In this document: positions 1 through 49,687 of the stretch, piece by piece
Layout of the letters: each line of letters opens with the position of its first letter
Position numbering within the stretch: position 1 is the first letter of the stretch
DNA from: Mobula hypostoma
Taxonomy: Eukaryota
DNA: 64,000 nt
Assembly (NCBI RefSeq): GCF_963921235.1
Contig: NC_086124.1
Span: 28,024,001-28,088,000, forward strand
Direction of reading: 5' to 3'
Made by a program: the position numbers and the translations under genes
Notes under the pieces: model-generated
Database searches by the model: none
What the model was told of the DNA's origin: nothing
What the model saw: the letters and a program-made list of their open reading frames with translations, nothing else

Positions 1-669
1 AATTCATGAAAATGGTTATTTCACTTCTTTTACGTCTGCTTCTCATCTTAAACGTGTTTCTGGAACTGTTACGCATCTGTGATTTACAGTCTGAAGATCA
101 ACAGAGTGACTTAGTGCTTTGCTGTTTCAATGAAAGTGAGTGCAAGCTCGAACGGCCTTAAAGTGAAATAGTTTAGAGATGGTGCACCAGCCAATGATAG
201 ACTCCATTTCACCGATTAAAGCATCGAGGAAAATTGAAATCAAGATGAGTGCAGAAAGGTGAGTGAGGGTTTAGCACTGACTGCTGTTTGATTGCAGGGA
301 GGGATCTCTCTGTTGTCAGATGAGTTGTGTAGTACCTTTCACTCACTGTTGCCGGAGGGTAGGCCTCTGTGTTTCAGTAGTCTCTCTATCTCTATCTCCC
401 AACACTGGTCAGAGGATAATACTGGGGCTCTGCGGCAATTATTTCTCGTTATTGTGTGGCGTGTTTTGTTAGTTCTTTGTGTGAAAGAAAGGAGTTTGGG
501 GTTTGATGTTCTTGTTCTTGACAGCTTTTTTTTGTGTGGTGTGGGTTTTGATGTTTATCTTTGAATGATTTCTGTGCATTTATTTGTACTGTGGCTATCT
601 GGAGAAGAAGAATCTCGGAGTTGTATACTGAGTACATAATTTTTTAATAAATGAACCTTTGAACGATTG

Positions 670-961
670 TTGATGCCTGACGGGGTGATTTGAGTATCTC
701 AGAGACTGTTGAGCTTCTGGGATTATCAGGCACGAGTCTCTAGAGTTTACAGTGAATACTGTGAGAAAAAAAAGACAACACCAAACATCTATTGAGTGGC
801 AGTTGTGGGCGAAAACACCTTGTCAGTGAGATTTCAGAGGAGAATGGCCAGACTGGTTCACGCTAGTGGATGGGCTACAGCAGCATAAGACCATGACCTT
901 ACACTCAATGGTCACTTTATTATGTAGAGGAAGTGCCTAATAAAGTGGCCACTGAGTGTAT
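670..961 (+). mobile_element. Tc1-like non-autonomous MITE (partial)
   Basis: Terminal hairpin TACACTCAATGGTCACTTTATT...AATAAAGTGGCCACTGAGTGTA at 900-961; homologous to the copies at 1858 and 5425. Confidence 0.65.
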
Positions 962-1039
962 AATATAGTGTTGGACAGAGTGTGAACCAGATCATCACCA
1001 GTACACTGGACCCCAAATTATTCAGACTCTGAGCCTTAC

Positions 1040-1321
1040 CCCAAACTGCATGCAGCTTTCCAGGGACGCTCAAATGCTTGATTTCACAAGTGTAAGTGTC
1101 ACCCTTCCCGGGGTCAATGTTGACCTGTTGCCGGACTTGGAATGTCCCATCCCGGTTGGGTAAAATGCTTGTATTTAGCACTTCCCGATCGATTCCTTCA
1201 CCATTCCGCAGCCACATTACGTGGATATCCTTGGGATAAAATCCATGCACTTGGCATGTCAGGGCCAAGGTATTCTCTCTGTTCTTCATGTGTCTTGAGG
1301 TTATTGTGATAGTCGGCTTCG
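1040..1321 (-). CDS. MHC Ig-C1 domain exon (class I alpha3-like; beta2 domain of putative W-category beta chain), exon 3
   Basis: 282-nt phase1/phase1 exon: acceptor ctgcAG|CGAAG, donor TGGG|GTAAGG. Encodes KPTITI...LTCQVHGFYPKDIHVMWLRNG...ILPNRDGTFQ...YTCEIKH...VW, with both C1-set cysteines, the GFYP motif and the class I-type LPNxDGTFQ motif. Confidence 0.92.
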
Positions 1322-1857
1322 CTGCAGTGGACAGAAACACATTGAAGCTGAACTTGGTTACAGGATCAGAAAAAGTAAAGAGTAACGGAATTTCAAAGTT
1401 CAAAGTATGCTTATTATTAAAACATCTATACATTATACAGCCTTGAGATTCCACCATGATAGAATGGCAGACTAGACTCGATGGACTAAATGGCCTATCT
1501 CTGAAGGCTAAAACCCTTTAATCTTGCATCCTTGGGACCTGACTGACACTGGACCATAGAAATTGTCTCCTTTAGTCCTAGTCTCGGCCCAAAATGTGTG
1601 TGTGTGTGTGTGTTGCTCTGGATTTCTACCACTTGAAGAATCTTTAGTGTTTAGATACTGTCCCCTGGGTCATTTGCCACTGACCAGGGGAATGGTTCTT
1701 TCAGACACTCCCAATTCACACAAGGGTTTCAAGAACTGTTGGCAACCCAGAGTTTCTGTAAGGTGGAAATACTGCTGGCCAAGAAATCAAAAGTTGAATT
1801 GGGAGGTTAATTAGCTACAGGTTAGTGCAGATCAGAATCAGGTTTGATATCAATAAC

Positions 1858-2385
1858 ATACACCCAGTGTCCACTTTACTAGGTACACCAGCTCATTAAT
1901 AAAAATATCTAATCAGCCAATCATGTGGCAGCAATGCAATGCATCAAAGCATGCTGGCATGGTCAAGAGGTTCAGTGGTGACAGACCAAACATCAGAATG
2001 GGGAAGGAATATGATTTAAGTGACTTTGACTGTGGACAAGGTGGGGTAGCTCAGAAACTGCTGATTTCCTGAGATTAAAACACACGACAGTCTCTAGAAT
2101 TAACAAAGAATGGTGTGACAAAGAAAAAAACATCCAGTGGGCGGCAGTTTTGTGGGCGAAAACGTCTTGTTAATGAGAGAGGTCAGAGGAGAATGGTCCG
2201 GACTGGTTCAATCGAACAGGAAGACAACAAGAACTCTAATCAGCACGTGTTACAACAGTGGTGGGCAGAAGAGCAACTCTGAATGCCTTAAAGTCGATGG
2301 GCTACGGCAACAGAAGACAACGAACATACACTCAGTGGCCAATTTAGTAGGCACAGGAGATACCTAATAAAGTAGCCACGGACTA
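1858..2385 (+). mobile_element. Tc1-like non-autonomous MITE
   Basis: Starts TACACCCAGTGTCCACTTTACTAGG and ends ACACTCAGTGGCC...AATAAAGTAGCCAC; internal sequence is shared with 670-961. Confidence 0.7.
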
Positions 2386-2439
2386 TGAGGTCATGAAATT
2401 TGTTGTTTTGCATAAAAATACAAATTACTAGAATAAAGA

Positions 2440-2945
2440 TTTAAATTAAATTAGGTCAAATAGCAAAAATAGTGCGTTTCTGTTCATGGACTGTTCATAA
2501 ATCAGATGGCAGAAGGGAAGAAGCTCTTCCTGAATCACTGAGTGTGTGCCTTCAGGCTCCTGTACCTCCTCCCTGATCGCTCCTTGAAGATTCCTGAATG
2601 CTAAGGAGGCTAGTGTCCATGATGGAACTGACTGAGCTCACAACCTTCTGCAGCTTCTTTCAATACTTTGCAGACTCTGCACCCCGCCCCATATGCCGCC
2701 AGTTAGAATGCTCTCCACGGTACATATGTAGAAATTTGAGCAAATCTTTGGCGGCATATCAACCTTCCTCAAGCTCCTAATGAGATTGAGCTGCTGTCGT
2801 GCTACCCTCGTAACTGTCTCAATATGTAGGGCCCAGGATAAATCCCCAGAGATATTGACAACTAGGAACTTGAAATTGCTCACTCTCTCCACTTCCGACC
2901 CCTCTCTGAGGACGGGTGTTTGTGTGTTCCCTTGTCTTGTCCTTT
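2440..2945 (-). mobile_element. LINE (L2/Rex1-like) RT 3' fragment
   Basis: Minus-strand FKFLVVNISGDLSWALHI...RQQLNLIRSLRKVDM...FYICTVESILTGGI, a typical LINE RT C-terminus. Confidence 0.7.
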
Positions 2946-2999
2946 CTGTCAAACTATAGCACAAAGCCTGTTTGAACATCACATTGACAACAAACTTAC

Positions 3000-3230
3000 T
3001 AGTCAGAGCTCGAATGGCATTGCGAATTCGTGGCGCAACAACCTCAAGGACGTGGATAACTTGACTCATATTCTTTCTGTTCTTGTTCAGTATGTCCAAG
3101 TAAGGCTGTACAAGCGGATTGACAGCCACAGCCTTTGCTGTGTTGCAATCAAAATGAACGAACTCTTCGCCATTGTAAGCATATATCTCCAGACTGCCAA
3201 AATATAGAGTTACTTGAGCGATGCGCATCC
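3000..3230 (-). CDS. MHC membrane-distal domain exon (class I alpha2 / class II beta1-like), exon 2
   Basis: 231-nt phase1/phase1 exon: acceptor ttcccAG|GGATG, donor CTGACTA|GTAAGT. Encodes GMRIAQVTLYFGSLEIYAYNGEEFVHFDCNTAKAVAVNPLVQPYLDILNKN...ALT. The YAYNGEEF motif matches class I YAYDGxDF. It splices in frame to the exons on either side. Confidence 0.82.
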
Positions 3231-3449
3231 CTGGGAAGCAAACAATAATCGATCCATTAGCCATTTGTGAGAGAGGAATGGCGCAGTTTAAAACCTTAAA
3301 ATTTAATCGAATTGAAACAGCAAATTTGTCTCTTCCCTTTCTGTGGATACCACACAATGAAAAGGTACCATTCCACCTATGTTTTTACCAGAACCACCTC
3401 TCCCTCCCACTATAAAACTCCAATAATACAGTAGACTTGGGATTCGGTC

Positions 3450-4220
3450 TTGCTGGGTAAGCAAATCCTTCACCTTCACTCACTGCATCCACCTCCCTCA
3501 GTTCCGTGCCAACATTCCCACCTACCCCCTCGACCAAACCCCTCTCTTCACCCTCAACGCCCACCTCTCTCTCAATCTCCCTGTCCAAATCGATACATAC
3601 CCTCGAAAGGCCCCTCCCTCAACACCCCTTCCACAGATATCTTTACTCACTATCTGCACCAAACTCTTCATCTACGCCCTCAGCACCCCGCCCTCTCTCG
3701 CTACACCCGCAGCGACCACTTTCCTCCCACTACAAACACCCTTGCTGCCCCCTGTCCACCTTCACTCCCTTGGCCCCCACTCTCCTTCGGAGACCCCTCT
3801 CCTCCCCTCAATCGACGCCCTTTCCCATTCCCACCCTCCATATGCGCCGCCTCCACCCCGCCCCACCCTCTCTCCCTAGGTGCCCGTTACCATCCGCTCC
3901 CCACCCTCCCTCGCTGCCTACTCCCCTCTCCACCCGATCATCTCTCGGTGTCCCCTCCCTTCCTCGGTGCTCCTCTCCTAGTGCTACCTCCCCTCCCTTC
4001 CTCGGTGCCCCTCTCCTCCCGACGCTACATCTCTGCCCCCTCCCCTCTTTCGTTGATCGCTCCCGTACCCTCCTCATCCTCCTTCGGTGACCCCTCGGCC
4101 TTACCCTCCCTTGGTGCCTCGGTGCCCTCTCCACTCTCCTCCCCTACCCACCCTATCCTCCCTCGGTGCCTCTTCACTTCCCCACCCGCCCTCGGTGCCC
4201 CCACTCCGCCCGGGCTGCGC
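3450..4220. repeat. Pyrimidine-rich low-complexity/degenerate minisatellite (CCCTCGGTGCC-like) in MHC intron 1
   Basis: Extreme C/T skew on the + strand with a recurring ctcggtg(c) motif. Confidence 0.7.
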
Positions 4221-4227
4221 CTCTCAC

Positions 4228-4273
4228 CTAGGGTGGGAGAGCCGTTGAGGAGGAGGAGGAAGGCGGCGAGCAT
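4228..4273 (-). CDS. Signal-peptide exon 1 of the MHC (putative WB) gene
   Basis: ATG at 4273 gives MLAAFLLLLNGSPTL+G, followed by a phase-1 donor G|GTGAGA. It joins the GG of exon 2 to give Gly. In-frame upstream ATGs exist at 4333 and 4345. It lies in a CpG-rich region. Confidence 0.75.
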
Positions 4274-4279
4274 AGTGGG

Positions 4280-4560
4280 AGAGCGGCGTCGCCTCACGCC
4301 GGCTAGCTGGCTCACGGTTCGAAGAGACGGCATCACTACTCCCATCTCTTCCGCCGCGGACTGAGAACCTCCTTGCCTCTCGTTGCCTTTCCGCCCGACG
4401 CCCTGAACCGACTGCCAGCCGGCAGGTCCCGTAACTGGAGACGATCGTTGTAGAAGTTTCCCCTGCTGTGTGGGCGGCCGCTGCCACAGACAGGTGGGGC
4501 GGGGCGGGACCAACGCCTTCCATTTCCAAATGGCGCTTTATTCTCAACACTAGTTGAGAG
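4280..4560 (-). promoter_or_regulatory. CpG-rich promoter/5' region of the MHC gene with GC box
   Basis: High CpG density and GGGGCGGGGCGGG at about 4496-4508, directly upstream of the leader exon. Confidence 0.45.
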
Positions 4561-5424
4561 GGAAGGTGATTGGGATACTAGGTGAGGGGTAAGGTGGGTG
4601 GGATATCAGGTGAGCGATAAGATGGGTGGTAGGAGAAGTGAGGATACCAGGTGAAAAGGGTTAGTAAGTGAGGCGGATGGTAGTTGGATGGATAGTGGAT
4701 GGAGCAATGCATGTGAGGGGGAAGGTATGAGGCTGGTTCATTTTCTATTCCTATCAGATTTCTTCTTCCTCAGCCATTAACCTTTTCTACCAATCACCTT
4801 TCAGCTTCTTATCTCGAAACCTCAACCCATCCCACCCACCTTCCCCCACTCCTGGTCTCACCTATCACCTGCAGGCATGTACACCTTCCCCAACTCCCAC
4901 CTTCTTACTCTGGCTTCTACCTTCACCATCCACCCCCCACTTTCATTTCCAGTCCCTTATGAAGGTTCTTGGCCTCTCGAGACATTGCCTGACCTGATGG
5001 GTTCCTCTGACATATTGTGTGTTTTACGTAAATATAGCATCTTTGAAGACGTTGCATGCCAATTAAGTGTGTCATCAAATGCGACGTTGAGATGCTAATG
5101 GTGATAGTTGCAAAGGTCAACAGATGTTTGAAGAAAGAGGTAGCTAAGCTACTTAGAACTTCATTTCATTCACTGAACTTCATTTTGAAGAGCCTCTTCT
5201 GTCCCAGTGTATCATGTGATTTGGATGGCGTATTTTGAAGTTCAAAGTAAAATTTATTATCAGAGTACATACCTGTCACCACATACAGCACTGTGATCCT
5301 TTATCTGTGGGCATACTTAGAAAATTTATAGAACAGTAACTGTAAACAGGATCTGTAAACTGTAAAGATCAGGAACTGGCAACTGTGAATAAACTGGGCA
5401 ACTTGTTTCAGTCAGAACAAGGGG

Positions 5425-5945
5425 AAGTAAACTCAGTGGCTACTTTATTACCTGCAGTTGGTACCTAATAAGGCAGCAGCCATAGTACATCCACTTCGAG
5501 GTTCGATGTTTTGTGCATTCAGAGATGATTTTCTGTACACCACGCATAGTTATTTAAGTTACTGTCGGCTTGAACCAGTCTGGCCTTTCTCCTTTGACCC
5601 CTTTCATTAAGACAGCTTCTGGTTTGCCCACAGAACTGATATGACTGGATGTTTTTTTTTGTTTTCGGACCATTCTGTGTCAACTCTAGAGACGATTGTG
5701 AATATCCCATGAGATCAGCAGTTTCCGAGATTTTCAAACCACCCTATGTGGCACCAACAATCATTCCATTTTCAAAGTCACTTAGCTCACATTTCTTCCC
5801 CCATTCTGATATTTAGTCTGAACAACAACTGAGTCTCTTGACTACCTCTACATGCTTTTATACATCGAGTTACTGCTACATGATTGACTGATTAGATATT
5901 TGCATCAACGAGCAAATGTACAGATATAGCAAAGAAGTACATAAT
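5425..5945 (-). mobile_element. Tc1-like MITE, reverse orientation
   Basis: Reverse-complement homology to 1858-2385, with the terminal hairpin at about 5428-5475. Confidence 0.6.
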
Positions 5946-6429
5946 ATTAAACATACTGTGGTATTGAAATATAACTCTCGCTTTGGCTAGCAGCTTAATA
6001 GAGGGGGTGATAGCCCCCGGCGCAGCCAAACTTAAGAAATCTCGTTTGGGTGGATGCTATGCAATGTGCCCCTAGAGCTGCAAAAGATCTTGCAACAATG
6101 TGCTCTTTATTTTTTTTTAAAGCTGCATAGACCAACAATTGTTCTGAGCAGGAAATTTTTACATGGCCTGAAAACTGTATGTGATACCTTGAATGTTATT
6201 TTTTCTTTAGTATGTGTACTATTGAATACTGAGAATGAAAATTGAAAAATCACATACTTTTTATTTATTAACTGAAGGGTATAATGTAATACAGTACAAC
6301 AAAGAAAATCTTTTATGTTTCATAAACCTTTTTTGTTTTCTTTTCTTCCAGCTGCACGGCAACAAAGGCTATGTGTGTGGGAGCATTTCAGTTACACCAT
6401 GGCTGTGCACCCGTGTGGCTTAGATGGAA

Positions 6430-7215
6430 CGGTGCCTTAGACAGATTAGGAGAATAGGCAAAGAAGTGGCAGATGGCATGCAATGTAGGGAAGTGTATGC
6501 TCTTTCACTTTGGTAGAAGGAATAAAGGTATTGGCTGTTTTCTAAATGGGGAGAAAATTCAGAAAACAGAGGCATAAAAGGACTTGGTAGTTCTTGTGCA
6601 AGATTTCCCGAACGTTAACTTGCAGGTTGAGTCATTACTAAGGAAGGCAAATACAATATTGACATTCATTTCAAGAGCGATGGAAGATAAAAACAAGGAT
6701 GTAATGCTGAGGGTTTATAAGGCATTGGCCAGACCACATTTGGAATATTGTGAGCAGTTTTGGGGCCCTTATCCGAAAGGATGTGACGGTATTAGAGAGG
6801 CTCCAGAGGAAGTTCAGAAGAATGATACCGGGAATGAAAGGGTTAACTAATGGCTGAACCTGTATTTGCTGGAGTTTAGAAGAATGAGTGGAGATCTCAT
6901 TGAGACCTCCAGTGGACGTGGATGCTTCCAATAGTGAGAGAATCTAGGACCAAAGGGCACAGCCTTTAGAACACAAATGAGGAGATATTTCTTTATCCAG
7001 AGAGTGGAATTCATTGCCACAGACAGTCGTGAAGGCCAGATCATTGGGTATATTTAAAGAGACGTTGATAGGTTCTTGATTAGTAAGGGCGTCAAAGGTT
7101 ATGGGAAGAAGGCAGGAGAACGGGGTTGATTGGAAAAATAGATTAACCTTGATGAAATGGTGGAGCGGATTCGATAGACTGAATGGCCGAATTCTGCTTC
7201 TGTGTATTATGGAAA
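6430..7215 (+). mobile_element. CR1 LINE 3' fragment
   Basis: KANTILTFISR...DVMLRVYKALARPHLEYCEQFW (CR1 RT C-terminus) followed by a CR1-type 3' UTR. Confidence 0.85.
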
Positions 7216-7349
7216 CCTCAGGGTAATAGTTGAATAGCTGAACAAATAAGGAACTAGCATCATAAAGGACCAGAGGGACACAGATACTGTATTATGGGTG
7301 ATAATTTTAAGAGGTGCTGTCACTGAACACTAGGTGGTGTAAGAGACCA

Positions 7350-7880
7350 GGGATGAGGTAGGTGTCTTCACTGGAATTCCACAAAGTGCATCGTCAGCCC
7401 CCTGCTCCGTGTACACTCACGACCTTCTGGCCGGATTCTGCTCGAACCCCACCTACAGGTTTGCAGATGAGACCACTGTAGTGGGCTGGATCTCAGATAC
7501 CAATGAGAGGAAGTAGAGGAAAGAAAGAGAGAGCCCAGTGGCATGGATTCGCGCTAACAACCTCTCCCCGACTGTCGGGAGAACAAAAGAGCTGGTCGTT
7601 GACTTCTGGAAGGGAGCGGTGCACGCACTCCTATTTACAGCACTGGTGACGGGGTGGAAAGCTGAAAATTTTTAGTAGAGAACATTATCAATAAGTTCTT
7701 CTGTTCCAACCACATAGATGCCGCAGCCAAGAAAGCGCACCATCTCTTCTATGTGCTCTGGAGACTAAAGAAATTTGTCTGCTCCCTTTGTACCCTCACC
7801 AATTTTTATCGATGCATCATGGAAAGCATCTTATTTGGATGCATTATGGTTTGGTTCGGCAACTTTTCTTCCTGAGGTCT
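7350..7880 (+). mobile_element. L2/Rex1-like LINE RT fragment
   Basis: Degenerate YTHD...KFADETTVVG...NNLS...KTKELVVDF-type coding remnants. Confidence 0.6.
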
Positions 7881-8040
7881 GACACCTGACAATGCAGGAA
7901 ATCACGGGAGCTGGTCCTAACTGCTCTGTGTCCGAAGATCAATGAAGAGTTTGAACCGCAGCACGGAAATTATTTGCAGTTCCATGAACACCAGAGCAGC
8001 ACGTATAGTAGTCGTGATCGGTGCAGACTCTGGACCTTAC

Positions 8041-8285
8041 CCCAAACTGCGCTCAGTCTCTCCAGGGCACTCCTGTACTCCAGTTGAGAATTGTAGGTGT
8101 TCGCCACCTGCTGGGGTCAACGCCGGCATGAAATCTACGTTGGAATCTCCTGTAAAATCCTTCGCTATTCCGCAGCCACGCTGTGTTAACGTCCCTTGGG
8201 TAAAATCCATCCACTCTGTACATCAGGACTGAGGGCTTTACTCCCACGTTCAGCTGTGTTAACGTTATGGTGATGGAACGTTTCG
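8041..8285 (-). pseudogene. Decayed duplicate of the MHC Ig-C1 exon
   Basis: KRSITIT...YRVDGFYPRDVNTAWLRNSEG aligns to 1040-1321. The acceptor is mutated AG>GG, the first Cys is Tyr, the exon is 37 nt shorter and frameshifted, and the donor TGGG|GTAAGG plus flanking intron homology is retained. Confidence 0.85.
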
Positions 8286-8319
8286 CCGCAGTGGAGAGAA
8301 ACCATAAGACACAGGAGCA

Positions 8320-9130
8320 GAATTCAAAGGTCCAATTTAATGTGTACAATATACATCCTGAAATGTTTTTTCTTCGCAAACATCCACGAAAACAGAGAAG
8401 TGCCCCCAAGAATGAAGACAGTTAAACGTCAGAACCCCAAAGTCCCCTCCCCCCAGTTCTCCCCTCCCGCGCGTAAGCGGTAGCAAGCAACGATACCCCT
8501 CCCCCCACCAGTGAAAAAAAAACCCGCATCGGTACCATCATAGAGCCCAAGCGTGTGCTAAGCAATGGAGTTGACATGGGCAAAGTTACCCCAAAAGCTT
8601 TGCATTTCTCCCATTCGACAAACCGCAGGTTCTCTCTCTCCCTGGCAAGGGAAAGGGAGGTGTCCCCCCATTTTCACAGTGAGTGGGAGACATAACAACA
8701 ACCCGCTGGTTATGATCGTAAAAATCCGTTTCTTCGTTTTTTTCCAGCTCTGTGTCCGAAGATTCGCGAAGACCTCTGGTTTCGGGCCCACAGCGTAAGA
8801 CTTTCCGACCACCCCGACGACACACGAGTGTCCAGCCGTGGCAACGACCCTCGATCCGCCCATCTCCAGAGCCCCGAGATCTTAGGCTTCCGAACACGAT
8901 CGAAATTCTCAGGTCAAACCCTTGTCAAACCGAATAACGGCCAGTTGTGGACCCCGAGAGCGGGTCCCATTCCCGTAAAAAACCGAAGCCTATGTCTAAC
9001 CAGGTCAGGGCCTTCAAAAGAATCCTGAAAGAGAAAAATAAAGATATTACAGGTGGAAATAGAACTGTTTCCAAAGATGCGAGCAAAGGAGTCGCCGTTA
9101 GGCACCATTATCCCTCCTAAGCTCCGCCTT
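8320..9130 (-). mobile_element. Unclassified interspersed repeat with LINE-type 3' tail
   Basis: CpG-rich non-coding segment ending on the minus strand in ...attaaattggacctttgaa, similar to other LINE tails in the window. Confidence 0.35.
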
Positions 9131-9829
9131 CAACTTGGCCCATTGTATCTGCTCTGCCAAACCACTATGGCTGATCTATTATCCCTCTCAACCTCATTCT
9201 CCTGCCTTACCCCCAGAGCTTTTGACACAATTACTAATCAAGAACCTCGCAACTTCTGCTTTAAACATACCCAATGACTTGACCTCCTCAGCTGTCTGTG
9301 GCAAAGAATTTCACAAATTCGGCACCCTCTGGCGAAAGAAATTCCTCCTTATCTCTGTTCTAAAGGGACGCACTTTTATTCTGATGAAGTGCCTCAGTAT
9401 TACTAAGAATGCTCAGTATAGGAGATGGAATATCATGTTATAGCATATTGGTAAGATCACTTCCATAGTGCTGAGGCTATGAAGACTGTCCCAGCTGCTG
9501 TGCTCCATGCCCGCTAACATGATGAACTGATAAACCAGGCTTTGGGCAGCTTCAGGGTTCGGATCTAAGGATCATTTTTGGTTTGGAATGCTGTTGTCTG
9601 CATGACCTCTTTTTTCTTTCTCCTGCGCATTGATTGTTTGTCTTTTTTATTTTTGTTCTTTTTTTTCCTTAATTGGGTTCTTTCAGGTTTCTTGCTTTGC
9701 GGCTACGCATGAGCAGGCAAATCTCAATGTTGTGTAATTTTTACATTCTTTGATAATAAATGCACTTTAATCTTGAATCAACGTACAGTTCTGGTTACTC
9801 TCCTGTAGGAAGAATTTTATTAAATGAAT

Positions 9830-11400
9830 AAAGTGCAAACAGTATGTTACCAAGACAAGAGGTTATAAGAAGCCAGATAGGCTGAGTCTATACCCTCTCA
9901 GTTGTAGGAGTTTGAAATGTGACCTTATAAACTTATAGAGGTTTATAAGACCACACTTGGAATATTGTGTTCCGTTATGTTTGCCTCATTATAGGAAAGC
10001 TATCGACACTTCAGAGAAAATGCAGAGGAGATTTATCAGGATGTTGTCTGTTCTGGAGGGCCTGTCTTATGAGGACCGTTTGAGTAAGCTAGGGTTTCTC
10101 TCTTTGGAGCAAATAAGATGATGGAGGTGTAAAATGATAAGAGGCGCAGATGAGGTAGATAGCCAGAGACTCTTTCCCAGTGTCCTTCCACTTCCTTTCC
10201 CTTGCACCCTTAACTCCTGGTGGAGTCGTCGGGGTGCCGTCATGACAAGCTTTGCACCAGTCTGTTCCATCTGTCGCGGTTGTGTGCCAGAGCCTGGGTC
10301 ACCACAAATGTTCTCCCTGTCCACTCTTTAATGTTGTCCATCCATCTTTTTCTCTGTCTACCTCTCCTTCTGTCTAAGAGGAATAGATAGAGTGGATAGC
10401 CAGCGCCTCTTCCCCAGGGCACCACTGCTCAATACAAGAGGACATGGCTTTAAGGTAAGGGGTGGGAAGTTCAAGGGGGATATTAGAGGAAGGTTTTTTA
10501 CTCAGAGAGTGGTTGGTGCGTGGTATGCACTGCCTGAGTCAGTGGTGGAGGCAGATACACTAGTGAAGTTTAAGAGATTACTAGACAGGTATATGGAGGA
10601 ATTTAAGGTGGGGGGTTATATGGGAGGCAGGGTTTGAGGGTCGGCACAACATTGTGGGCCGAAGGGCCTGTACTGTGCTGTACTATTCTATGTTCTATGT
10701 TCTTTTCCCCTCCACACTTCCTTGTAGAACGGTCTTTGCAAGGCCACTGGATCTTGTTACGTGGCCATACCATCTCATCTTTCTTTTCTTCACCGTTGTG
10801 AGAAGGTCTTCATGACCGCAGCCGATTTCCCTCAACCAGGTGGCTCCCCTTGGTCGTGAACACGTGGCCGTTATAGTTCATCTGAGAACCTTTCCGCCCG
10901 GTGATGCCGTGTTAACACCACCCCCTCACGGAAGTCATTCGCCCGGTGGTGCCGTGTTAACACCACCTTCTCAGGTGGTTTAGTCCGCCAGCTGAAGCGG
11001 TTTACCGGGGTATGGCGCTTGGAGCCAACACTTGAGAGATTTACGAGATGGATGAGGACCGGTAATGCCCGTCCACCCTGTCTGGTAGGGAGCAGCATGA
11101 CAGACATCAAAGGTACTACCTCTATCCAGCGCCCCCTATACCCCAGGGTGGAAATCCCTAATAAGAGAGGGTATAATTTTAAGGTGATTGATGGAAAGTA
11201 TGGGGGGGGGGAGGGATGTCAGAGATTCCCCCCCCCCCGCCCCCCACTACCAGCGTTGGTGGTAGAGACAGATATATTAGGGGCTTTTAAGAAACTCTTA
11301 GATAGTCACATGGGTGATAGAAAAATGGAGATGTATGTGGGAGTGTAGAGTTAGATTGATCTTGGAGTAGGTTTAAAGGTTGGCAAAACATCTTGCACCA
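9830..11400. mobile_element. Nested retrotransposons: CR1 (+) split by RTE (-), itself split by CR1 (+, about 10381-10710)
   Basis: RTE C-terminal motifs EDLLTTVKK... and RRRGRQRKRWMDNIKEWTG lie on either side of a CR1 3' end ending (CTATGTT)n. The outer CR1 continues across cccag|ggtggaaat. Confidence 0.7.
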
Positions 11401-16307: not shown

Positions 16308-17212
16308 TTACTCTTCATTCCGAATAGTTTCTCTCAAAATGCGAGTGAATGGAAGTTTCACCACCTCTCGCATCTGCTCCCTGAACTTCCTCTGGGTAAA
16401 GGCGTAAAGAGCCGTGTTTGTGCAGCAGCTCAGTAGCTGCAGCATGTAGCCCAGCTCCCTTGTGGTCTCAGGTGGGATCCCAGCACCAAAATATAACAAA
16501 CGCTTCCAGACAGTGTGCACAACATAAAGCATCCACAAGACTATGAAATTCGCCGACACGACCAACAGTAAAATGATCGACTTCCTTCGGTTCTCCATTT
16601 CCGGATCCTTGGAACTATCCCCACTATTACGACTCCGGAGTCTCCCCCGGGCTCTGCTCGCCACTACCACGTGTCTGATGATCAAAGCATTGAGCAGCAG
16701 AATGACCACAAACGGGATCACAGGCGTCAGGGAGTAGCTACTGAATTCAACCAAGGTCCAGGCCACTAAGCGATGTAAAATAAATCTTTCTACGCAAAAC
16801 CGAGGGATGTTAGAGAGGCTATAATTTACAAAGAGCATAAAATACCAGAAAATCTTCTTCAAGCAGCTCAGCGCGGCCACAGTCCCCAGAACCACAGCTG
16901 CCGTTCTCTCGGTGCAGTATTTAGCTTTCAGATTCTGGCAGCGAATAGCCACAAATCGGTCAAAAGTGAACATGACGGTAAACCAAACGGAACAGTCGTT
17001 GGCTGCGTAAAGTAGGACGGCGTGGACATTACAAATGGGGATGTTCACCAGGAATTCAAAAGATTCCGAATAAACAATCGGAATCTGCCTCAGTACCAGG
17101 TCTAAGATAACAACCAGGAGATCCGCTGCCGCCATGGCCATCAGGTAACGAGTGACTCCTTTAGAAAGACCGCATTTTCCCCGGGACAGGACCACAATCG
17201 TCAGCACGTTCA
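16308..17212 (-). CDS. GPR139-like class A GPCR copy A, exon 2 (intact)
   Basis: Acceptor cccaatAG|TGAAC, open to a stop at 16308. Motifs NVLTIVVLSRGKCGLS, AMAAADLL, FTFDRFVAI (DRF), ECL disulfide cysteines and CTNTALY.TQRKFR. Confidence 0.92.
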
Positions 17213-17839
17213 CTATTGGGATTGAAGGAAACACCATCTCGTCAGTGGGGAAGTAGAAATGTCGGCCAAGTTACAGACAGGAAATTTGGAAACATGTTTT
17301 TGAACCAAGACTTGTAGACTGCAGCTTTCCAGCATCGGCGATGTCTGCAGGGGACGAGGATGAGAGAGAGCTCAGTGAAATCAACAAAGGACGGGAAAAT
17401 AACGTCATCACATCAACAAACGAAGATCTGAGAAGGAGTGTTCCCGGATTTCGGTGACGATGGATTTGGAATAGGGGTCCGAATTGGTCATTGAATTGTA
17501 ATTGCTTTACTGTTACCAAACTGGTATAACAAGGTACAGGGAAACACCGTGTACACTGTGCAGACAGATCAATACATTACTGTACTCAGTGCTTTGAGAC
17601 TGTGCCGTAAGTTCAGCTCCAGCTCTCAGGCTTCTTCTGCCGGTCCTTTAAATTTAAACAATATTCCTCAAACGAGAATTGGGAAGTCGTCTATTTTAAA
17701 CTACACTCTAACCTGATGAGTTCTATATCTGAAACTTTAAGAGATAGAAACTCAGTTAAATCTTGTAAACTCCAGCTCAGAACCTGTTAATTTAACGTTG
17801 TTTTTAAATAAAATATTTTGTCTGTTGTTATTTCAGTTT

Positions 17840-18112: not shown

Positions 18113-21100
18113 TCTGCACACCAGTGACTACCAGGAATAGTCTGGTTGGCAACCGGGAATAGTTCGGTGTCAGCGTGGAGAGACAGCGGGCAGCCAGGAA
18201 AGACTGGCACCGGGGGTGTCAGGATTGGCAGTCTGGGCACCAGCTCAGAAGAGCACCCACCTCTTGAAGCTTTAGTTTATATGGAGAAACATATCCTCGG
18301 AGTCCTCCGAGAGGGAGGGAGAATGATGGACCCAATCGGACGGCTGCAATTAATTACAGGGAACGACTACGGCCAAGAGCTAGGATAACAGGCTCTGAGT
18401 GTCCAGTGTGTTGGTGTGGGAGAGCATTTTCCAGCATTAAAGGTTTACGAGTCCACCAAGCAAAGTTGAGGTGCTAATACATCCCAGTGGATGAAGATGA
18501 GATTTCTTCACCAAGCACAGATGATGTGGTCTTTTCAACCTCTCATTCACAAGCCACAGCGATTCGCTCTGGAGAGTCATCATACTCCAGGTCAGACGAG
18601 AGATAACCCAGGTCAGGTTTCAGACCACAGTACCCAGGTAGATCCTTCGCATGATGGCGGCAGTGTGGAGATAGAGAAGAAGAGGAAGGTCAAGTGGCCA
18701 GCAATGGCAGATGAGAAGGCTTGGCGTGTATTTGATGAGAATATCAGTATGATGCTGGAGAACACTCTCAGGGCAACATCAAAGAGAAAGTTGGAAGTGA
18801 TGGGCGATATGATTTACGATGTTGGAAAGTACAGGTTTGGTTTGGTTGAGTTGAAGAAAGCAAAGCCTTCAAGCAGGCGGCCGAAGGAGATTAGAAAGTT
18901 GAGGAGAGAGCTTAGATCGTTGAGACAGAGGTGGAAGGTAGCAAGTGAGGGTGACAAGCCAGGGCTTGCTGATCTCCGAGAGCATTTTCGAATAAAGTTA
19001 GGATCACTCCGTCGTGCAGAGTCACAACATAAAAAGAGAAAGAAGAGAGAGAAGGCAAGAAAGTCATTCTTTGAGAACCCTCACGTGTTCACAAAGAAAC
19101 TGTTTGAACAAAGTAAGAGTGGGCAGCTTAACATCTCTCAACAAGAACTTGAGGATCAGCTGGCAAGCACTTACTCTAACGAACAGCGGGAGGCTCCTTT
19201 GCTTGACATTTCAGGGCTTGTGAAGCCTACCAAGCCAGGAGTGAAGTTCGATCTGTCAGAACCCAAACTGGCAGAAGTCGAACGGTTCATTAGAAAGGCA
19301 AGGTCAGGCTCAGTGCCAGGACCTAATAGAGTGCCATATAAGGTGTTCAAGAAGTGTGAACAGCTGAGGAAATACTTGTGGAGATTGTTAAAGGTGGTGT
19401 GGAGACAAGGTGTTGTTCCTCTGTCATGGAGTGAGGCTGAAGGAGTATACATCCCGAAGGAAAATAATTCTTCTACATTGAACCAGTTACGACCAATTTC
19501 ACTCCTGAATGTAGAAGGGAAGATTATGTTTGGCATTCTGGCAGAAAGAATATCTTCATTTGTGATAGAGAATGGATTAGTAAATGCATTTGTGCAGAAG
19601 GCAGGAGTACCAGGCTTCCCAGGATGCTTTGAACATTCTAGTATGATATGGCATACCATCCAGGAGTCTAAAAGGTTGAGAAGAAATCTGGCTGTAGTTT
19701 GGCTTGATCTGGCAAATGCATATGGTTCTGTTCCCCATGTCCTGATTGAGTTTGCGATGGAATTCCTATGGATTCCTGCTAAGGTGAGGAACTTTGTTAT
19801 GCAGTACTACAACGATTTCCGGATGAAGTTTTCCACTCAGCTGTTTACAACTAGGTGGCAGAGCTTGGATGTTGGAATCCCAATGGGATGTGCAATTTCA
19901 CCCAACCTTTTTGTGTTAGCCATGGAGGTCATTGTGAGGCCTACAGAATCAGTGGGATCTGGTGTCGCACTTGATGGTGGACAGGAGTTACCACCAATAC
20001 GAGCGCTCATGGACGATCTTACCCTTTTGGGTCACAGCACGGAGACAGTGGAAAATGTACTATCTAGACTCGAGGAGCTAATGGATTGGGGAAGAATGAA
20101 GTTCAAGACCAGGTAGTCAAGGAGCCTTGTTCTTAGGAGAGGAAAGCTGGTTGACTTTAATTTCACCCTTTGTGGAGAGGAGATTCCATCCATTCAGGAC
20201 CAACCAGTTAAGAGCCTCGGGCGATGGTACACAGAGGAGCTGAGAGACATCAAGAGGGTTCAAGAGACAGGAGAACAGATCAACAGAGGTCTGATGTCCG
20301 TTGACAAGTGTGGCTTGCCTGGCAAGTTGAAGTTGTGGTGCTTGCAGTACAGACTGATGCCACGGATAATGTGGCCGCTAACTGTCTATGAAGTGGCAAT
20401 GTCCCATGTTGAGGCAATGGAACGGAAGATCAACAAGTATGTGAAGAAGTGGCTTGGAGTACCGAGCAGCCTCTCCAATGTTGCAATCCACAGTAGCCAG
20501 ACAAAGCTTACCATCCCAGTGCAATCCCTTGTTGAGGAGGTCAAGGTAGCCAAGGTAAGATCATTCTTGATGCTTCGAGACTCAGAAGACCCTGTCATCA
20601 AGAACACCCAGCCAGATGTGAGATCAGGCAGGAAGTGGTCAGCCCGTGTAGCAGTTGATGAGGCAGAGTCTAGATTGAAGCACAAGGAGATGATTGGGTC
20701 TATCCAGCTAGGCTGCCAGGGACTTGGATGGACAACCCACAAACGGTGGTCATCTTCTACAGGTAAGGAGCGCCGTGAGCTTGTAACACAGGAAATACGA
20801 GAGGTAGAAGAGGAGAAGAGGTTAACTAAAACAGCTGGCCTGACCAAACAAGGGGCTTGGACCCAGTGGGAAAGTGTTGAACAACGACATCTATCTTGGA
20901 ACGTTCTGTGGCAGAAGGAACCGCTCCACATTTCTTTTCTATACAGAGCAGCGTACGATGTGCTCCCAACACCTGCCAACCTCAGCACCTGGTATGAAGG
21001 TAAGACAGACAGGTGTGCTGCTTGTGGCGAGAAGGGAACACTTCAACATATTTTGAGTGCATGCAGAGTCAATCTTTCCAGCGGCTTGTACACGTGGAGA

Positions 21101-21941
21101 CATAACAACGTTCTCAAAGATGTAACAGAAGCAGTTGAGCAGAGAGTACTGCAGCACAACTTATCTCATGTCCCATGCTGCACAGAACATCACATATCAT
21201 TTGTGAAAGAAGGCTCCAAGTCAAGGGTGTACAGCATAGGCCCACGATCAAGCATACTTTCTTCAGCCAATGATTGGTGTGTCAAGGCCAACCTGGATGG
21301 GAAAGGCAGTTTCCCGGAACAAATAGCTTTCACCACATTACGTCCAGATATAATCGTATGGTCTGACACCAGTAGGGAAGTGGTTATTGGTGAACTCACA
21401 GTCCCCTGGGAAGACAACATCAATGAAGCCCATGAGTGCAAGTTAACGAAGTATGCAGAATTAAGTTCAGAGTGCAGAGACAGAGGGTGGAAGGTCTTGT
21501 GCTATCCATTTGAAGTAGGCTGCCGTGAGTTTATTGCGTTCACTCTCCAGAAGTGACTGCGTGACTTTGGCTTCCCTAGAAGAGAGATCAAGTCAACCAG
21601 CAGGGCTGTAGCTGAGGCGGCAGAAAAAGGATCAGCATGGGTATGGACCAAGTACATCCAGAGGGGCAGATAGTCAGACAGTGTATACATATCTTGCAAA
21701 CCCTTCAGTAGTTGCATAGACACCTGAAGAACAGACTATCTGTTGGAGGCAGATGCCAAGTTTTTAAGCTCACCAGTGGGAGGTGGTGCTTTAGCACTGC
21801 TGGCCCACCACTTCGAGGGAGTCTTGATCATAAACGGGCCGAAACTCCTGAAGACAGATGGCAGATCAACTGATGATCCCACTGGTGATAGCACAGGACA
21901 GTTAACATCTTAGTCCACGTGTACTTTGTAACTCATTTTGT
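18113..21941 (+). mobile_element. Near full-length RLE-type (R2/NeSL group, HERO-like) non-LTR retrotransposon in GPCR A intron
   Basis: N-terminal CWCGRAFSSIKGLRVHQ...C motif at about 18408; RT motifs QKAG..GF.GC.EH, LDLANAYGSVPH, GIPMGCAISP, LMDD; CCHC knuckle (CAACG...HILSAC); RLE RPDIIVW/ELTVPWE/K.TKY. One frame from 18491 to 21673 with in-frame stops at 20114 and 21554. Confidence 0.9.
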
Positions 21942-25821: not shown

Positions 25822-26309
25822 CAGTTATTTTATTTGTCATTTTCCACCCTTTGCTGGTAGTTTTGTACAGCAGTCATTTAGGTCATGTGATCTGCGTCTC
25901 CAGTTGATGACATCATCTGTACCAGCTCTCCAGGTAGAGTTGAAAGAGAGCTTGTGCCTTTTCATTCGACATCATCCTGACGTTCAGATCTTTGAACGCA
26001 TCGTCGGTATGTAAAAGTCATCTTTGGGTTTATTATTTATTGATGTATATGCATATTTCCACAAATCAGAGATATTTGAATGGTTTGTGTGCAGATAAAG
26101 TACAGATGGAATATTCATGCGGGCCACATGTTCTGGCTAACCTGTAGTGAGAAAATGTGCATTAGATACATTGTATGCAGCAACAACTTGCTGACCAGTA
26201 GCCTATCTTTATGATATATTCGGAACTTATTTGTATACAGTATCTTGTTTATTATTTTGTATCATTTGTGGTATACCTAATGCTTGCCTTTTACTTAACC
26301 ATAATGGGA

Positions 26310-27042
26310 ATTTGGACAGTACTGAAATAAACCAAAGGGATGCACACAATGTGGACAACATAAATCATCTGCAACACAATGAAATTCCCCGACACGGCCA
26401 ATAGTAAAATGATCCTTGGGTTCTGCATTTTCTGGTCCTTGGAGCGATCCCCACTATTGCGTCTCCGGAGTCTTCTCCGGTCTCTGCTCGCCACTAACAC
26501 GTGTCTGATGGTCAAAGCATTGAGCAGCAGAATGACCACAAACGGGATCACAGGCGTCAGGAGGTAGCTGCCGAACTCGACTACGGTCCAGGCCACTGAG
26601 ATTAGGGGAGCAGAACGTACTTCGCAAAACCAAGGGTTGTGAAACATCCAATATATCCCTGAGAGCAAAAAATACCAAAAAATGTTCTTTAAACAGCTCA
26701 GCGCGGCCACGGTCCCCAGAACCACAGCCGCCGTTCACTCGGTGCAGTATTTAGCTTTCAGATTCTGGCAGCGAATTGCCACAAATCGGTCAAAGGTGAA
26801 CATGACGGTGACCCAGACGGAACAGTCGTTGGCTGCATGAAGTAGGCCGGACTGGACATTACATACGGGGATGTTTATCAGGAAATAAAACGCTTTCCAG
26901 CAAACAACAGGAAATTGCCTTAGTACCAGGTCTAAGATAACGACCAGGAGATCCGCTGCCGCCATGGCCATTAGATAACGAGTGACTCCTTTAGAAACAC
27001 CGCACTTTCCCTGGAACAGGACCACAATCATCAGTACGTTCA
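26310..27042 (-). pseudogene. GPR139-like GPCR copy B (exon 2 only)
   Basis: Acceptor intact, nonsense AGA>TGA at 26735-26737, 3' end (TM7) lost, exon 1 removed by a deletion at about 27650. Confidence 0.9.
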
Positions 27043-30000
27043 CTATTGGGATTGAAAGAAACACAAGCATGTCAGTGGGCAAGGAGCAAAGTCAGCAAAT
27101 TACAGTCAGGAAATATGGAAACATGTTTTTGAACCCAGACTTGAAGAATGTTCCGGCATCAGCGATCTCCGCTGGGGACGAGGGTTACAGCTCAGTGAAG
27201 TCGACAAAGAAGTTGAAAATAACGTCATCGCAGCAACCAACGAGCAGCTGATAAGAAGGGTTCTCGGATTTCGGTGAAGATGGATTTGGAATAGGGCTCG
27301 GAATTGAGCATTGAATTGGAATTGCTTTACTATTACCGAAGTGGTATAACAAGGTACAGGGAAACACGCGTCTCCACACTGTGCACACACATTAATTCAA
27401 TACTCGGTGCTTCGAGGCGGTGTTGTAATTTCAGGTCGAGCTCTCAGACTTCTTCTGCCGGTCCCTTAAATTTATTCCATCTCCCTCAAAAAATATTTGG
27501 GAAGTCATCTATTTCAAACTACACTCCAAACTGGTGAATTCAATAATCTAGGGATGCAGACTCAGTTGAAACTTTTAAACGCCAACTCAGAACTTTTTAT
27601 TTAACGTTGTTTGTAAGCGAAGTTATTGTTCTATTCATTTGTATTTTGAAACTCAATGCACTGTGGCAATGATATTTTATCTGTGTTTATTTCTTGTGTT
27701 TTTGCCTTGCATTGAATGCAGAGTAAGAATACTTCGTTCTCCTTTGCACGTACGAATAAAAAAAAACCCGTTTACAAATTTTACCACTGTGCAGTGGGAT
27801 GGACCAATGGGATCGGGAACTAAGGCTGATGGAGTCGTGGCGTGTGGTCCGCAAGTCTATGAACTTTGAGCAGTCTCCTCGGAGTGAAAGGCTGAGATGA
27901 GATCCTTTCCATGGTTGGGAGGAGGATGATATAAACCCGCAGAACTTCGCAGCATCTAATCTAACGTCACTGCGAGGGTGATGAATGAGTGGATATTGTG
28001 TATCGGATGAGGAACACTTCGGAAATTATGCGCGGGAAAATTGCCTCATAAAAGGGATTTAGATCATATCTGTATTAAAGTAATATGTAGATATTACTTT
28101 CCGTTATGCAAACCGTTCACTCACCTGAAGCTGTGTTAACCCACACAGAATGCTGCAGGTTTTCGGCAGTTGAGACAGCATCCATGGAGGTGAATAAAGA
28201 GTCGACGTTTCGGGTCGAGACCATTTTAAATGGAGCTACGAATAGTTCTGGAGAGGAAGGACACACATGCCAGAATAAGACGGTGGGGGAGGCGATACGG
28301 AGTACAGACTAGTACGTGATACTTGTGGCCAAGTGAGCGGTTAGGTGGGTGGGTGAGGAAGAGGGATGAAGCAAAGATGTTGTAGTTGATATTTGGAAAA
28401 AGTAAGAGATGGAGAATAAGGAATCTGATAAGAGAGGGGAATGAACAATGGAGAAATGGAAGGGGGTGGGGAAGTGAGGGAGTGAAGGAAGAGTAGTATC
28501 AGAATGGACAATTGAAGAAAAGGGAAGGGGAGCGCAGAAAAGTATCGGAAAACATTAAAACCATGACATTTTATTTTAATGCACCTACCACAGCAAAAAT
28601 ATTTCCGCAATTATACCCATCTGCATATCTCTTAGGTTGATGTAATTCGTTCGGGTCACCTCGCAGGAAAAAATAAGACCAGCTTATCCAATATCTCTTC
28701 ATAACCTGCAACCCAAACAAATTTCCAGAGATTCTCCTCCGCAGCCGATCTCATCCTCCTGTACTACGGTGACCAGAATTACACATAGTACTGTAAAGCC
28801 GGGCTAGGTAATGTTATGCATATGAGATGGTGTAGAAAAAAGAAACAGCCGTGACTAAATAGCGGAGAAGTCCAGTTGGGCAGAATAGCTTCATTGTGAG
28901 GCTCTCATTTTCAGGTTCAATACCTCACCCTGGGTCCCTTTCACTTTCCAGATTTAACCTTTACACTCACAGGTACGCCCTGTCCTTCGCCTGTTGATAT
29001 CTCCCTCTTAATACTCCCTCACTGGACGTCTGTTCCTTCCATTAGACAACTGCTAGATGTTGTCGAAATGTCTGGATATTATCCCTGTTCTAGCTTATGG
29101 CTTAATATCTGGATCCGTCCTCACCCTTCCCATAACGAACTGAAAATTAAAAGTCAATCTCACAGGATTAGGGGACTGCTGAATAGTCTTGCAACAAGGG
29201 GATAGAGGCTGTCTTTAGCCAGATTTAATTTTCTTTCGAATAGGATAGAGCAGCAGGGAGAATGTCTTGAGTTGAAGGATATGTTGTTATGTGGGCGCTT
29301 TACTGTTCCAGAGAGGTGTGCAGACAGAATCTCTGAACTGGAGACAAGTTGACCTAATGACCGGTCTGCGACAGGAAGGGAAGCAGCGTCAGCGAATTCA
29401 CCGGGAGCGTTTGGGACGTCAGCCTGGAAACACCCCTTGTTTCAGGTGTGTGGTACAGACCAGAATTCAGCACACTGCTGGGCTGCGTTGGGCTCTGTTT
29501 GTACATACGGGAAACCATCACATGTGTGGAAGGTCGGAAGTTGTGCGCACGCACCAGACGGCGGTGCATAGGGTCAGAATTTTGGGGATACACACCAGTA
29601 CACCAGGGAGCGGTGCTGCGAGACGTGTGCACAGTCAAACCCCAGTGGAGATGGGTAGAGCATAGGGAGGCGTGTGGGAACACAAGACAACGGAACAATG
29701 GTAAACACGTTTGGATCTCCCTCCTATATGCTGATTGTGTTATCAGCTTCGATCCGGTCAGCGATAATGGTATCGTTGGAAAACCTAAATAAGGCATGGG
29801 AGCTGTGCGGAGCCTTACAGTTACTGAATATGAAGCAAATTTATCAGTGGGCTCAGCACCCAGTCTTTTGGTGCACCTGTTCTGATGGAGAATATGGAGC
29901 AGATGTTGTTCTCAATCCGAACTGACCGGGGTCTGCATGTGACGATATCGAAGATCTGTTTGCACAAGGAGGTATTCAGAGCATTTTCGTTAAGTTTATT

Positions 30001-35317: not shown

Positions 35318-35915
35318 TTACTCTTTATTCCGAATAGTTTCTCTCACGATGCGAATGAATGTAAATTTCACCACCTCTCGCATCTGCTCCCTGAACTTCC
35401 TCTGGGTAAAGGCGTAAAGAGCCGTGTTTGTGCAGCAGCTCAGGAGCTGCAGCATGTAGCCCAGCTCCCACAGGGTCAAAGGTGGGTACGCAGCACTAAA
35501 ATAAAACAAACGCATCCACACAGTGTGCACAACAAAAGCCATCCACAGCACGATGAAATTTGCCGACACGACCAACAGTAAAATGAGCGACTTCCTTCGG
35601 TTCTCCATTTCCAGGTCCTTGGAACTATCCCCACTGTTGCGACTCCGGAGTCTCGTCCGGGCTCTGCTCGTCACTAACACGTGTCTGATGGTCAAAGCAT
35701 TGACCAGCAGAATGACCACAAAGGGGATCACAGGCGTCAGGATGTAGCTACTGAACTCAACCACTGTCCAGGCCACCGAGAGATCGACAGCATACCTTAG
35801 TTCGCAAAACCAAGGGATGTTAGAAAGCTGATACTTTCCTGAGAGCATAAAATACCAGAAAATGTTCTTTAAACAGCTCAGCGCAACCACAGTCGCCAGA
35901 AATACAGCCGCCATT
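35318..35915 (-). pseudogene. GPR139-like GPCR copy C, 3' remnant of exon 2 (TM4-TM7)
   Basis: Open TM4-TM7 reading, but fused directly to intron sequence (cagccgccattctc|ccccaacaatcag); the acceptor and TM1b-TM3 are deleted. Confidence 0.9.
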
Positions 35916-47762: not shown

Positions 47763-48438
47763 TCAACCTCTTTCTCTATGCGGGCAGCGCCGGTTACTTA
47801 GCTGATCATTCCGAATAGTTTCTCTCAAACTGCGAGTGAATGGAGATTTCACCACCTCCCGTATCTGCTCCCGGAACTTCCTCCGTGTCAAGGCGTAAAG
47901 AGCCGTGTTTGTGCAGCAGCTCAGTAGCTGCAGCATGTAGCCCAGCTCCCCGATGGTCAAAGGTGGGTACAGAGCACTAAAATAAAGCAAACGCATCCAC
48001 ACAGTGTGCACAACAAAAACCATCCACAATACGATGAAATTCGCCGACACGACCAACAGTAAGATGAGCGAATTCCTTCGGTTCTCCATTTCCGTGTCCT
48101 TGGAACTATCCCCATTATTACGACTCCGGAGTCTCCTCCGAGATCTGCTCGCCACGAACACGTGCCTGATGGTCAAAACATTGAGCAGCAGAATGACCAC
48201 AAACGGGATGACGGGCGTCAGGAGGTAGCTGCCGAACTCGACTGCGGTCCAGAACTCTGAAAGCAGGACATCTTAAATTACATTGCAAAACCAAGGTACG
48301 TTAACAAGCTGATAGTTGTCTGAGAGCGTAAAATACCAGAAAATGTTCTTTGAACAGCTCAGCGCAGCCACAGTCCTCAGAACCACAGCCGCCGTTCTCT
48401 CGGTGCAGTATTCAGCTTTCAGATTCTGGCGGTTCTGT
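47763..48438 (-). pseudogene. GPR139-like GPCR copy D, remnant of exon 2
   Basis: TM4-TM7 homology with a frameshift in ECL2; fused to intron at attctggc|ggttctgtaag (acceptor and TM1b-TM3 deleted). Confidence 0.9.
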
Positions 48439-49610: not shown

Positions 49611-49687
49611 TTCGAACGCTAAATTTGGGACGGGGTAAATTGATTGGGTTAAAAATTCCCGAAAGAAAGAAAAAGCAAACAGCAGAA

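Follow-up and report, generated by a model that had tools for sequence, protein, structure and literature searches.

The W-category is an old third kind of major histocompatibility complex (MHC) molecule, described by Okamura et al. (2021, PNAS; PMC8713811). Its members have been proposed as an intermediate between MHC class II and class I, and little is known of their ligands or role. The beta chain of the category, WB, is defined (Dataset S1 numbering) by Q6, A32, G35 and D37 in the membrane-distal beta1 domain and by P57 and a residue other than Trp, mostly Gly, at position 61 of the beta2 domain (PMC8713811). The category itself, its three elasmobranch lineages, and partial WB_DS1-like and WB_Nds5L sequences from the little skate are already published (PMC8713811), and these little-skate fragments have so far been the only batoid representatives. 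Here we describe a gene in a stretch of 64,000 nucleotides from the devil ray Mobula hypostoma (contig NC_086124.1, positions 28,024,001 to 28,088,000; hereafter the window, numbered from its first letter). The gene is very probably an intact, transcribed W-category MHC beta gene of the WB_DS1 lineage. A first-pass annotation, made from the letters of the window alone, had proposed it as a candidate batoid WB gene which automated annotation would likely mislabel, and both parts of that proposal are borne out below.

Within the window the gene has three minus-strand exons, with GT-AG borders throughout and phase 1 at every junction, and the frame remains open across all of them through canonical splice sites. 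The coding part of the leader exon comprises 39 codons and one further nucleotide. Of the leader limits first proposed, 4228 to 4273, the 3' end at 4228 holds and the start does not. The ATG at 4273 is internal to the leader, and the start codon is most likely the ATG at 4345 (the protein beginning MGVVMPSLRT...), because the NCBI protein for this gene, P0151, begins there and the Hemitrygon orthologue has a Leu at the residue aligned with the Met of 4273. Pfam assigns the second exon to MHC_II_beta (E 1.7e-8), which is the sole distal-domain family matched, and the third to C1-set, an immunoglobulin (Ig) family (E 6.5e-19); no match to the Pfam family MHC_I was found in the gene's exons.

The splicing pattern was read from the contigs of two public runs, X1 and X2, both from this organism and both labelled as RNA by a guess. 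Without a single mismatch, 3229..3000 is followed directly by 1321..1040 in two contigs, one of 1219 nt (X2 record 9) and one of 505 nt (X1 record 3). Such contigs leave out a 1.7-kb intron exactly at its GT-AG borders, which marks them as spliced transcripts and hardly as genomic DNA. The exact 3000|1321 join therefore shows splicing to be as read, with no further exon between the two domains, and the search for junction contigs that had been suggested for this site thus gave the predicted join in both runs and no additional exon of the class I alpha1 type. Contigs and annotated product together show only one distal exon separating the leader from the Ig exon, i.e., the two-domain chain like that of class II that had been read from the sequence. 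X2 record 9 carries just 42 nt upstream of exon 2 and, downstream of exon 3, about 665 nt that are not in the window. At the other end of the gene, a 441-nt contig of X1 gives exon 1 a 5' untranslated region (UTR) of at least about 340 nt, reaching at least position 4683. When contigs were mapped to 4200-10100 in search of upstream exons spliced to the gene, only this exon 1 contig and repeat-derived contigs appeared. Summed contig depth is very high at 1849-2926, within intron 2, and its source is repeat copies elsewhere.

Several further observations concern the transcripts and their surroundings. A transcribed paralogue is represented by contigs whose identity over the Ig exon is about 91% (933-1322; X1 record 2 and X2 record 8), and one such contig runs 107 nt into the equivalent of intron 3, being either unspliced or spliced from another donor. 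Intron 1 holds a long purine-rich low-complexity tract of the GGGAGG type at 3450-4200. A similar tract in the opposite sense lies at 4560-4700, just upstream of the mapped 5' UTR, and the exon 1 contig ends there. Visual inspection of 4346-5240 gave no convincing S-X-Y promoter boxes of the class II type, only a lone GATTGG at about 4795.

The database protein P0151 (Mobula hypostoma, 273 aa) is 100% identical to all three exons and continues after the Ig domain with a transmembrane (TM) segment and tail, which are outside the window. Residues 211-273, i.e., the 63 residues of connecting peptide, TM segment and tail, found no match in the 64-kb window by tblastn, and the gene model spans 15,445 bp, which places the last exons about 11.1 kb to the left of the window edge. 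A TM or cytoplasmic exon within positions 1-1039 is ruled out by tblastn with the full product and by the span of the gene model, in keeping with the first-pass report that no TM exon could be found there with confidence. As for the leader of P0151 (residues 1-40), it is unusually long and has an RRRR stretch before its hydrophobic core; this stretch is kept in all ray WB_DS1-like proteins and absent from the shark ones.

Table 1. Features of the window, with the evidence for each (contigs are those of runs X1 and X2)
Feature	Position	Strand	Evidence and remarks
Exon 1, coding part (leader/signal peptide)	4228..4345	-	Identical to P0151 residues 1-40; donor TAG|gtgaga
Exon 1, 5' UTR, minimum extent	4346..4683	-	441-nt contig on 4243-4683, 0 mismatches; contig stops at the start of a repeat
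Intron 1, purine-rich low-complexity	3231..4227	-	GT..AG borders; zero contig depth at 3235-4158
Exon 2, single membrane-distal (beta1) domain, 77-aa short form	3000..3230	-	231 nt; acceptor ...cccag, donor gtaagt; Pfam MHC_II_beta; P0151 residues 41-116, 100%; RNA contigs on 3000-3229
Intron 2, interspersed repeats	1322..2999	-	GT..AG borders; precisely skipped by two contigs
Exon 3, Ig C1-set (beta2) domain, 94 codons	1040..1321	-	282 nt; acceptor ...ctgcag, donor gtaagg; Pfam C1-set; P0151 residues 118-210, 100%; RNA contigs with 0 mismatches; WB_DS1 in tree
Start of intron 3	1..1039	-	Connecting peptide, TM and cytoplasmic exons beyond the window
Decayed WB_DS1-type beta2 exon, paralogue relic, outside the transcript	8036..8286	-	tblastn to ray and shark WB
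Seven-transmembrane receptor family	16308-17237 (-), 26291-27082 (-), 35318-35914 (-), 47763-48200 (-), 62099-63087 (+)		
Non-LTR (long terminal repeat) retrotransposon open reading frame	18491-21556	+	RVT_1, zf-RVT
Two near-identical tandem LTR-retroelement gag-pol copies	49589-51978, 53767-56060	+	SCAN-like capsid, zinc knuckle, integrase zinc domain

P0151 was found by a HMMER search of representative proteins with the Ig exon and by two family searches. The HMMER list was dominated by proteins with many Ig domains and summed scores, and its useful part was five single-domain matches. The family search from one protein query returned 10 ray sequences, and a profile of nine sequences reached sharks, a sawfish and class II beta. 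With this profile, only ray, sawfish and shark homologues scored above 210 bits, and the next matches were bird class II beta chains at 154 bits or less. Rays, a sawfish and sharks together contribute 16 homologues that have the same layout of leader, beta1, beta2 and TM segment. In NCBI, P0151 is called "class II histocompatibility antigen, B-L beta chain-like", and every ray and shark relative found is likewise labelled as 'class II ... beta chain-like', which is the mislabelling that had been foreseen. Three long-form paralogues from M. birostris and M. hypostoma (P0005, P0009 and P0157) are present as isoforms that skip beta1, the leader being joined straight to the Ig domain, or that end after the Ig domain without a TM segment, in an unrelated tail. 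They may represent soluble forms or forms that lack beta1, or else annotation artefacts of read-through in a tandem cluster.

The residues that define WB were compared in an alignment, where the class I-type interface of the first-pass annotation is seen as described. The three motifs on which it had drawn (GMRIAQ, YAYNGEEF and ILPNRDGTFQ) are all confirmed in the translation. The beta1 domain has Q6 (in GMRIAQ) and A32, G35 and E37 (in YAYNGEEF), and the same E in place of D at position 37 occurs in the shark WB_DS1 homologues P0089, P0160, P0161 and P0162. In the beta2 domain, P57 and G61 fall in ILPNRDGTFQ, where the class II beta rows of the same alignment read NGDWTYQ; these rows also have neither A32 nor G35. 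The two-domain architecture of a class II-type beta chain is given by the exon phases, the spliced contig and the 273-aa product. By eye, the glycines of the P0151 TM segment stand at the same six positions as those of houndshark WB_DS1 in Dataset S3.

For the phylogenetic trees, database proteins were tied to named rows of the supplementary alignments of PMC8713811 and served as anchors. The beta1 string of P0160 (Scyliorhinus torazame, from a 159,043-bp contig) is exactly that of 'cloudy catshark WB DS1L 159K'. With few changes, P0159 (Heterodontus) matches the bullhead WB_DS1 row, P0162 (Mustelus) the houndshark WB_DS1 row, and P0089 and P0167 (lamniform sharks) the great white WB_DS1 row, while P0198 (Pristis) matches the WB_Nds5L rows. 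The Ig tree was built by maximum likelihood with the second and third Ig domains of merged class I models excluded, and the beta1 tree excluded two reptile class I models with a truncated alpha2.

Both domains of the gene fall inside WB_DS1. In the Ig tree the sequence of this gene lies in a ray clade (99/98), which is joined by the sawfish (Pristis) WB_DS1 (98/96) and then by the WB_DS1 of Heptranchias and Heterodontus (96/99). Class I stands apart from these, as does class II beta, whose sequences, DM beta among them, cluster together (95/93). The domain-tree check that had been proposed for the gene thus placed its Ig domain with WB_DS1 and with neither of those two classes. In the beta1 tree the sequence of this gene pairs with the Hemitrygon short form described below (100/98), and WB_DS1 is one group (85/93). 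A split (90/86) has WB and class I alpha2 on one side, where class I is its own group, and class II beta1 on the other. Taken with the hallmark residues, these placements make membership of the gene in WB, lineage DS1, well supported by sequence comparison.

Rays have two forms of this protein, which differ in their distal domain. The long form, with a beta1 of 86 aa as in sharks and the little-skate fragment, occurs in Mobula hypostoma, M. birostris, Hypanus and Hemitrygon. The short form, with a beta1 of 77 aa, is represented by this gene and by P0010 of Hemitrygon akajei. Relative to the long ray paralogues, the short beta1 has 6 residues fewer in the S1-S2 hairpin and 3 fewer in the helix, and the span from Q6 to A32 is 12 residues in the short form, 18 in the long form and 25 in teleost class I alpha2. 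Like the remaining ray WB_DS1 and most shark WB_DS1, it has no cysteine pair; the first Cys position is F in this gene and the second is A/P. Between short and long forms of the same species, identity is 35-42% in beta1 and 76-84% in the Ig domain. Between the Mobula and Hemitrygon short forms it is 82% in beta1 and 80% in the Ig domain, versus 60-71% and 81-85%, respectively, between the long forms of these genera. The presence of the short form in both Mobula and Hemitrygon implies that it is older than the split of these two families of Myliobatiformes, and the identities indicate that constraint on its distal domain has been stronger than in the paralogues.

We generated a predicted structure of the chain with AlphaFold2 from a 40-sequence alignment. 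The beta1 domain was modelled as four strands and a long helix, with predicted local distance difference test (pLDDT) values of 50-79, and the Ig domain was modelled with confidence. Foldseek searches with this model returned class II beta chains (HLA-DR, DQ, DP and DO beta) as the best structural matches across both domains, as expected for this architecture. It is tempting to read the short beta1 as marking a distinct, old and selectively maintained W molecule of stingrays and devil rays (Myliobatiformes) which acts differently from the long WB_DS1, although we hold this tentatively and consider it somewhat doubtful. If it were so, a hairpin 13 residues shorter than that of class I alpha2, together with the missing disulfide, would leave the floor of the groove truncated, and the molecule might bind no ligand or a small one, or itself act as a chaperone-like partner, on the same module of Ig domain, TM segment and tail.

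The NCBI name raises the reading that the gene encodes a conventional class II beta chain that has diverged, non-classical in the manner of DB, DO or DM, and that pairs with a conventional class II alpha chain. The exclusive Pfam match of the distal exon to MHC_II_beta agrees with such a reading, as do the chicken class II beta chain BLB2 as the best PDB sequence match of beta1 and the HLA beta chains as the best structural matches. However, W-category and class II molecules share both architecture and fold by definition, so matches of this kind do not discriminate between them. The features that do discriminate point away from class II: Gly replaces the invariant Trp at beta2 position 61, Pro of the class I and W type stands at position 57, both cysteines of the beta1 disulfide (C15-C79) are missing, and A32 and G35 occur where class II differs. 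The closest solved relatives of the Ig exon in the PDB are MR1, CD1 and class I alpha3, and class II beta, DM beta included, stands apart from the sequence of this gene in both trees. By the residue and tree tests this reading is largely refuted, and we consider it very unlikely. The same PDB matches of the Ig exon, along with the class I alpha2-like Q/A/G motif of beta1 and the position of WB on the class I alpha2 side of the beta1-tree split, could instead suggest a gene or fragment derived from class I, i.e., a truncated and possibly non-functional heavy chain that lacks its alpha1 exon. Against this, class I is separate in both trees and MHC_I is not matched, the glycine pattern of the TM segment is of the beta-chain type as in shark WB_DS1, and the gene is spliced and transcribed. 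Moreover, the sharing of one layout by the 16 ray, sawfish and shark homologues indicates an old architecture and no recent truncation, and the chance of this explanation being right appears to us minimal.

A different concern is whether the short beta1 represents damage rather than design, in which case the gene would be a paralogue that is transcribed but has no function and is turning into a pseudogene. Two in-frame deletions in beta1 relative to all other WB_DS1 and an unpaired Cys could be seen in that light, as could the decayed WB beta2 exon 4 kb upstream. Nevertheless, the frame is open over all exons and the splice sites are canonical, the AlphaFold2 model retains the four strands and the helix, and the Hemitrygon akajei orthologue shares both deletions, its beta1 identity exceeding that between the long forms, which is the pattern of purifying selection. 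Decay of this kind therefore seems highly improbable. On residues, trees and the conservation of the orthologue, we rejected all three of these readings in favor of an intact WB_DS1 gene.

Several points nonetheless weigh against the assignment to WB_DS1 or temper it. Support for WB_DS1 as a whole is moderate in both trees (73/88 in the Ig tree and the 85/93 given above for beta1), and neither tree included elasmobranch class I or classical class II beta sequences. The RNA label of the two runs is a guess, although splicing as seen in the contigs is hardly compatible with genomic DNA. The pLDDT of the modelled beta1 reaches only 50-79, and the chain was modelled alone. Finally, an opposite-strand gene model starts 4.5 kb past the 3' end of the gene, with a C1-set domain merged with SRCR domains (as given in the annotation). 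If this neighbor were a W-category alpha chain (WA), the pair would be arranged tail to tail; the published W pairs of sharks and teleosts are head to head (PMC8713811).

How an intact WB_DS1 chain of this kind would work can be proposed from the tiger salamander, in which recombinant WA and WB acquired mature glycans and reached the cell surface only when together, this being the only experiment on record (PMC8713811). By analogy with that pair, the ray product, predicted to consist of a signal peptide, one membrane-distal domain and one Ig C1 domain followed by the connecting peptide, TM segment and tail, would most likely pair with a WA chain to form a surface heterodimer of class II shape held together by contacts of the class I type. 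The published hallmarks of the WA alpha2 domain are a beta2-microglobulin-like character, W61, L55, F/Y57, Y8 and no W37, and the partner of WB_DS1 in the great white shark is WA_DS10. In such a dimer, the Trp of the WA alpha2 domain, which resembles beta2-microglobulin, would pack against Q6, A32, G35 and E37 of beta1, and the Tyr of that domain would be in contact with P57 of beta2; position 61 lacks the class II Trp. The WA partner, expression at the cell surface and the type of ligand are inferences here. The missing disulfide, the shortened sheet and the high conservation between genera, together with the absence of classical peptide-anchoring residue sets from shark W molecules, point to a non-classical function of low diversity rather than to classical peptide presentation.

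Elsewhere in the window, the relic of a second WB_DS1-type beta2 exon at 8036-8286 has its acceptor AG changed to GG, both Ig cysteines replaced (by Y and S), and a 13-codon deletion with a frameshift. Among the contigs mapped to 4200-10100 none covered it specifically, and no beta1 or leader relic was found adjoining it. In addition to the retroelements listed in Table 1, the window contains an intronless family of rhodopsin-type seven-transmembrane receptors, in which one copy keeps an intact 309-aa open reading frame (Pfam 7tm_1, E 7.6e-20) and the other four are truncated or frameshifted.

The gene is a further member of the known WB family, and NCBI already lists its protein, named there as class II. 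Nevertheless, our literature search turned up no paper describing ray WB genes, and the locus provides a complete, expressed ray WB gene with the structure of its extracellular exons. The new point it offers is a modest one, namely a conserved sublineage with a short beta1 (77 aa and no disulfide) which this gene shares with the stingray Hemitrygon. Because the whole family is filed as "class II beta" in public annotation, counts of MHC genes in cartilaginous fish will be distorted. A conserved short beta1 and a fast-diverging long beta1 on a near-identical module of Ig domain and TM segment also amount to a natural experiment on which part of the W molecule bears its function.

Compared with the systems already known, the gene shares with conventional class II beta chains such as chicken BLB2 and HLA-DRB1 its exon plan, domain order and fold, the Pfam family MHC_II_beta and the best Foldseek matches. 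These chains differ from it in having W61, the C15-C79 disulfide and a longer S1-S2 hairpin, in lacking A32, G35 and P57, and in forming their own clade. With class I heavy chains, including MR1 and CD1, it shares the interface residues Q96, A117, G120, D/E122, P235 and G239 (HLA-A2 numbering), whereas those chains carry alpha1 on the same chain, have beta2-microglobulin as a partner and a disulfide in alpha2, and form a separate group in the trees. The closest described system is WB_DS1 of houndshark, catshark, great white, bullhead, dogfish and little skate (PMC8713811), which is likewise a two-domain beta chain of the class II type and has in common with the ray gene Q6, A32, G35, D or E at 37, P57, G61 and the spacing of the TM glycines. 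Most WB_DS1 also have no beta1 disulfide, the first Cys position being F here and in houndshark and blue shark, Y in catshark and I in great white. The shark and sawfish members are 49-62% identical to this gene in the Ig domain, and the gene nests among them in the tree. In contrast, beta1 is only 24-30% identical to theirs, and measures 86 aa elsewhere in WB_DS1 versus 77 here, with the deletions of 6 residues in the hairpin and 3 in the helix. Nearer still are the long ray paralogues (P0007, P0153 and P0156 of M. hypostoma, P0152 of M. birostris, P0154 of Hypanus sabinus and P0155 of Hemitrygon akajei), which have the same RRRR leader, Ig domain, TM segment and tail and which in M. hypostoma lie on the same chromosome-scale contig. 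Their Ig domains are 79-84% identical to that of this gene and their beta1 domains 35-42%, and they differ from it in an 86-aa beta1 that is less conserved between genera and in a 9-residue insert in the leader.

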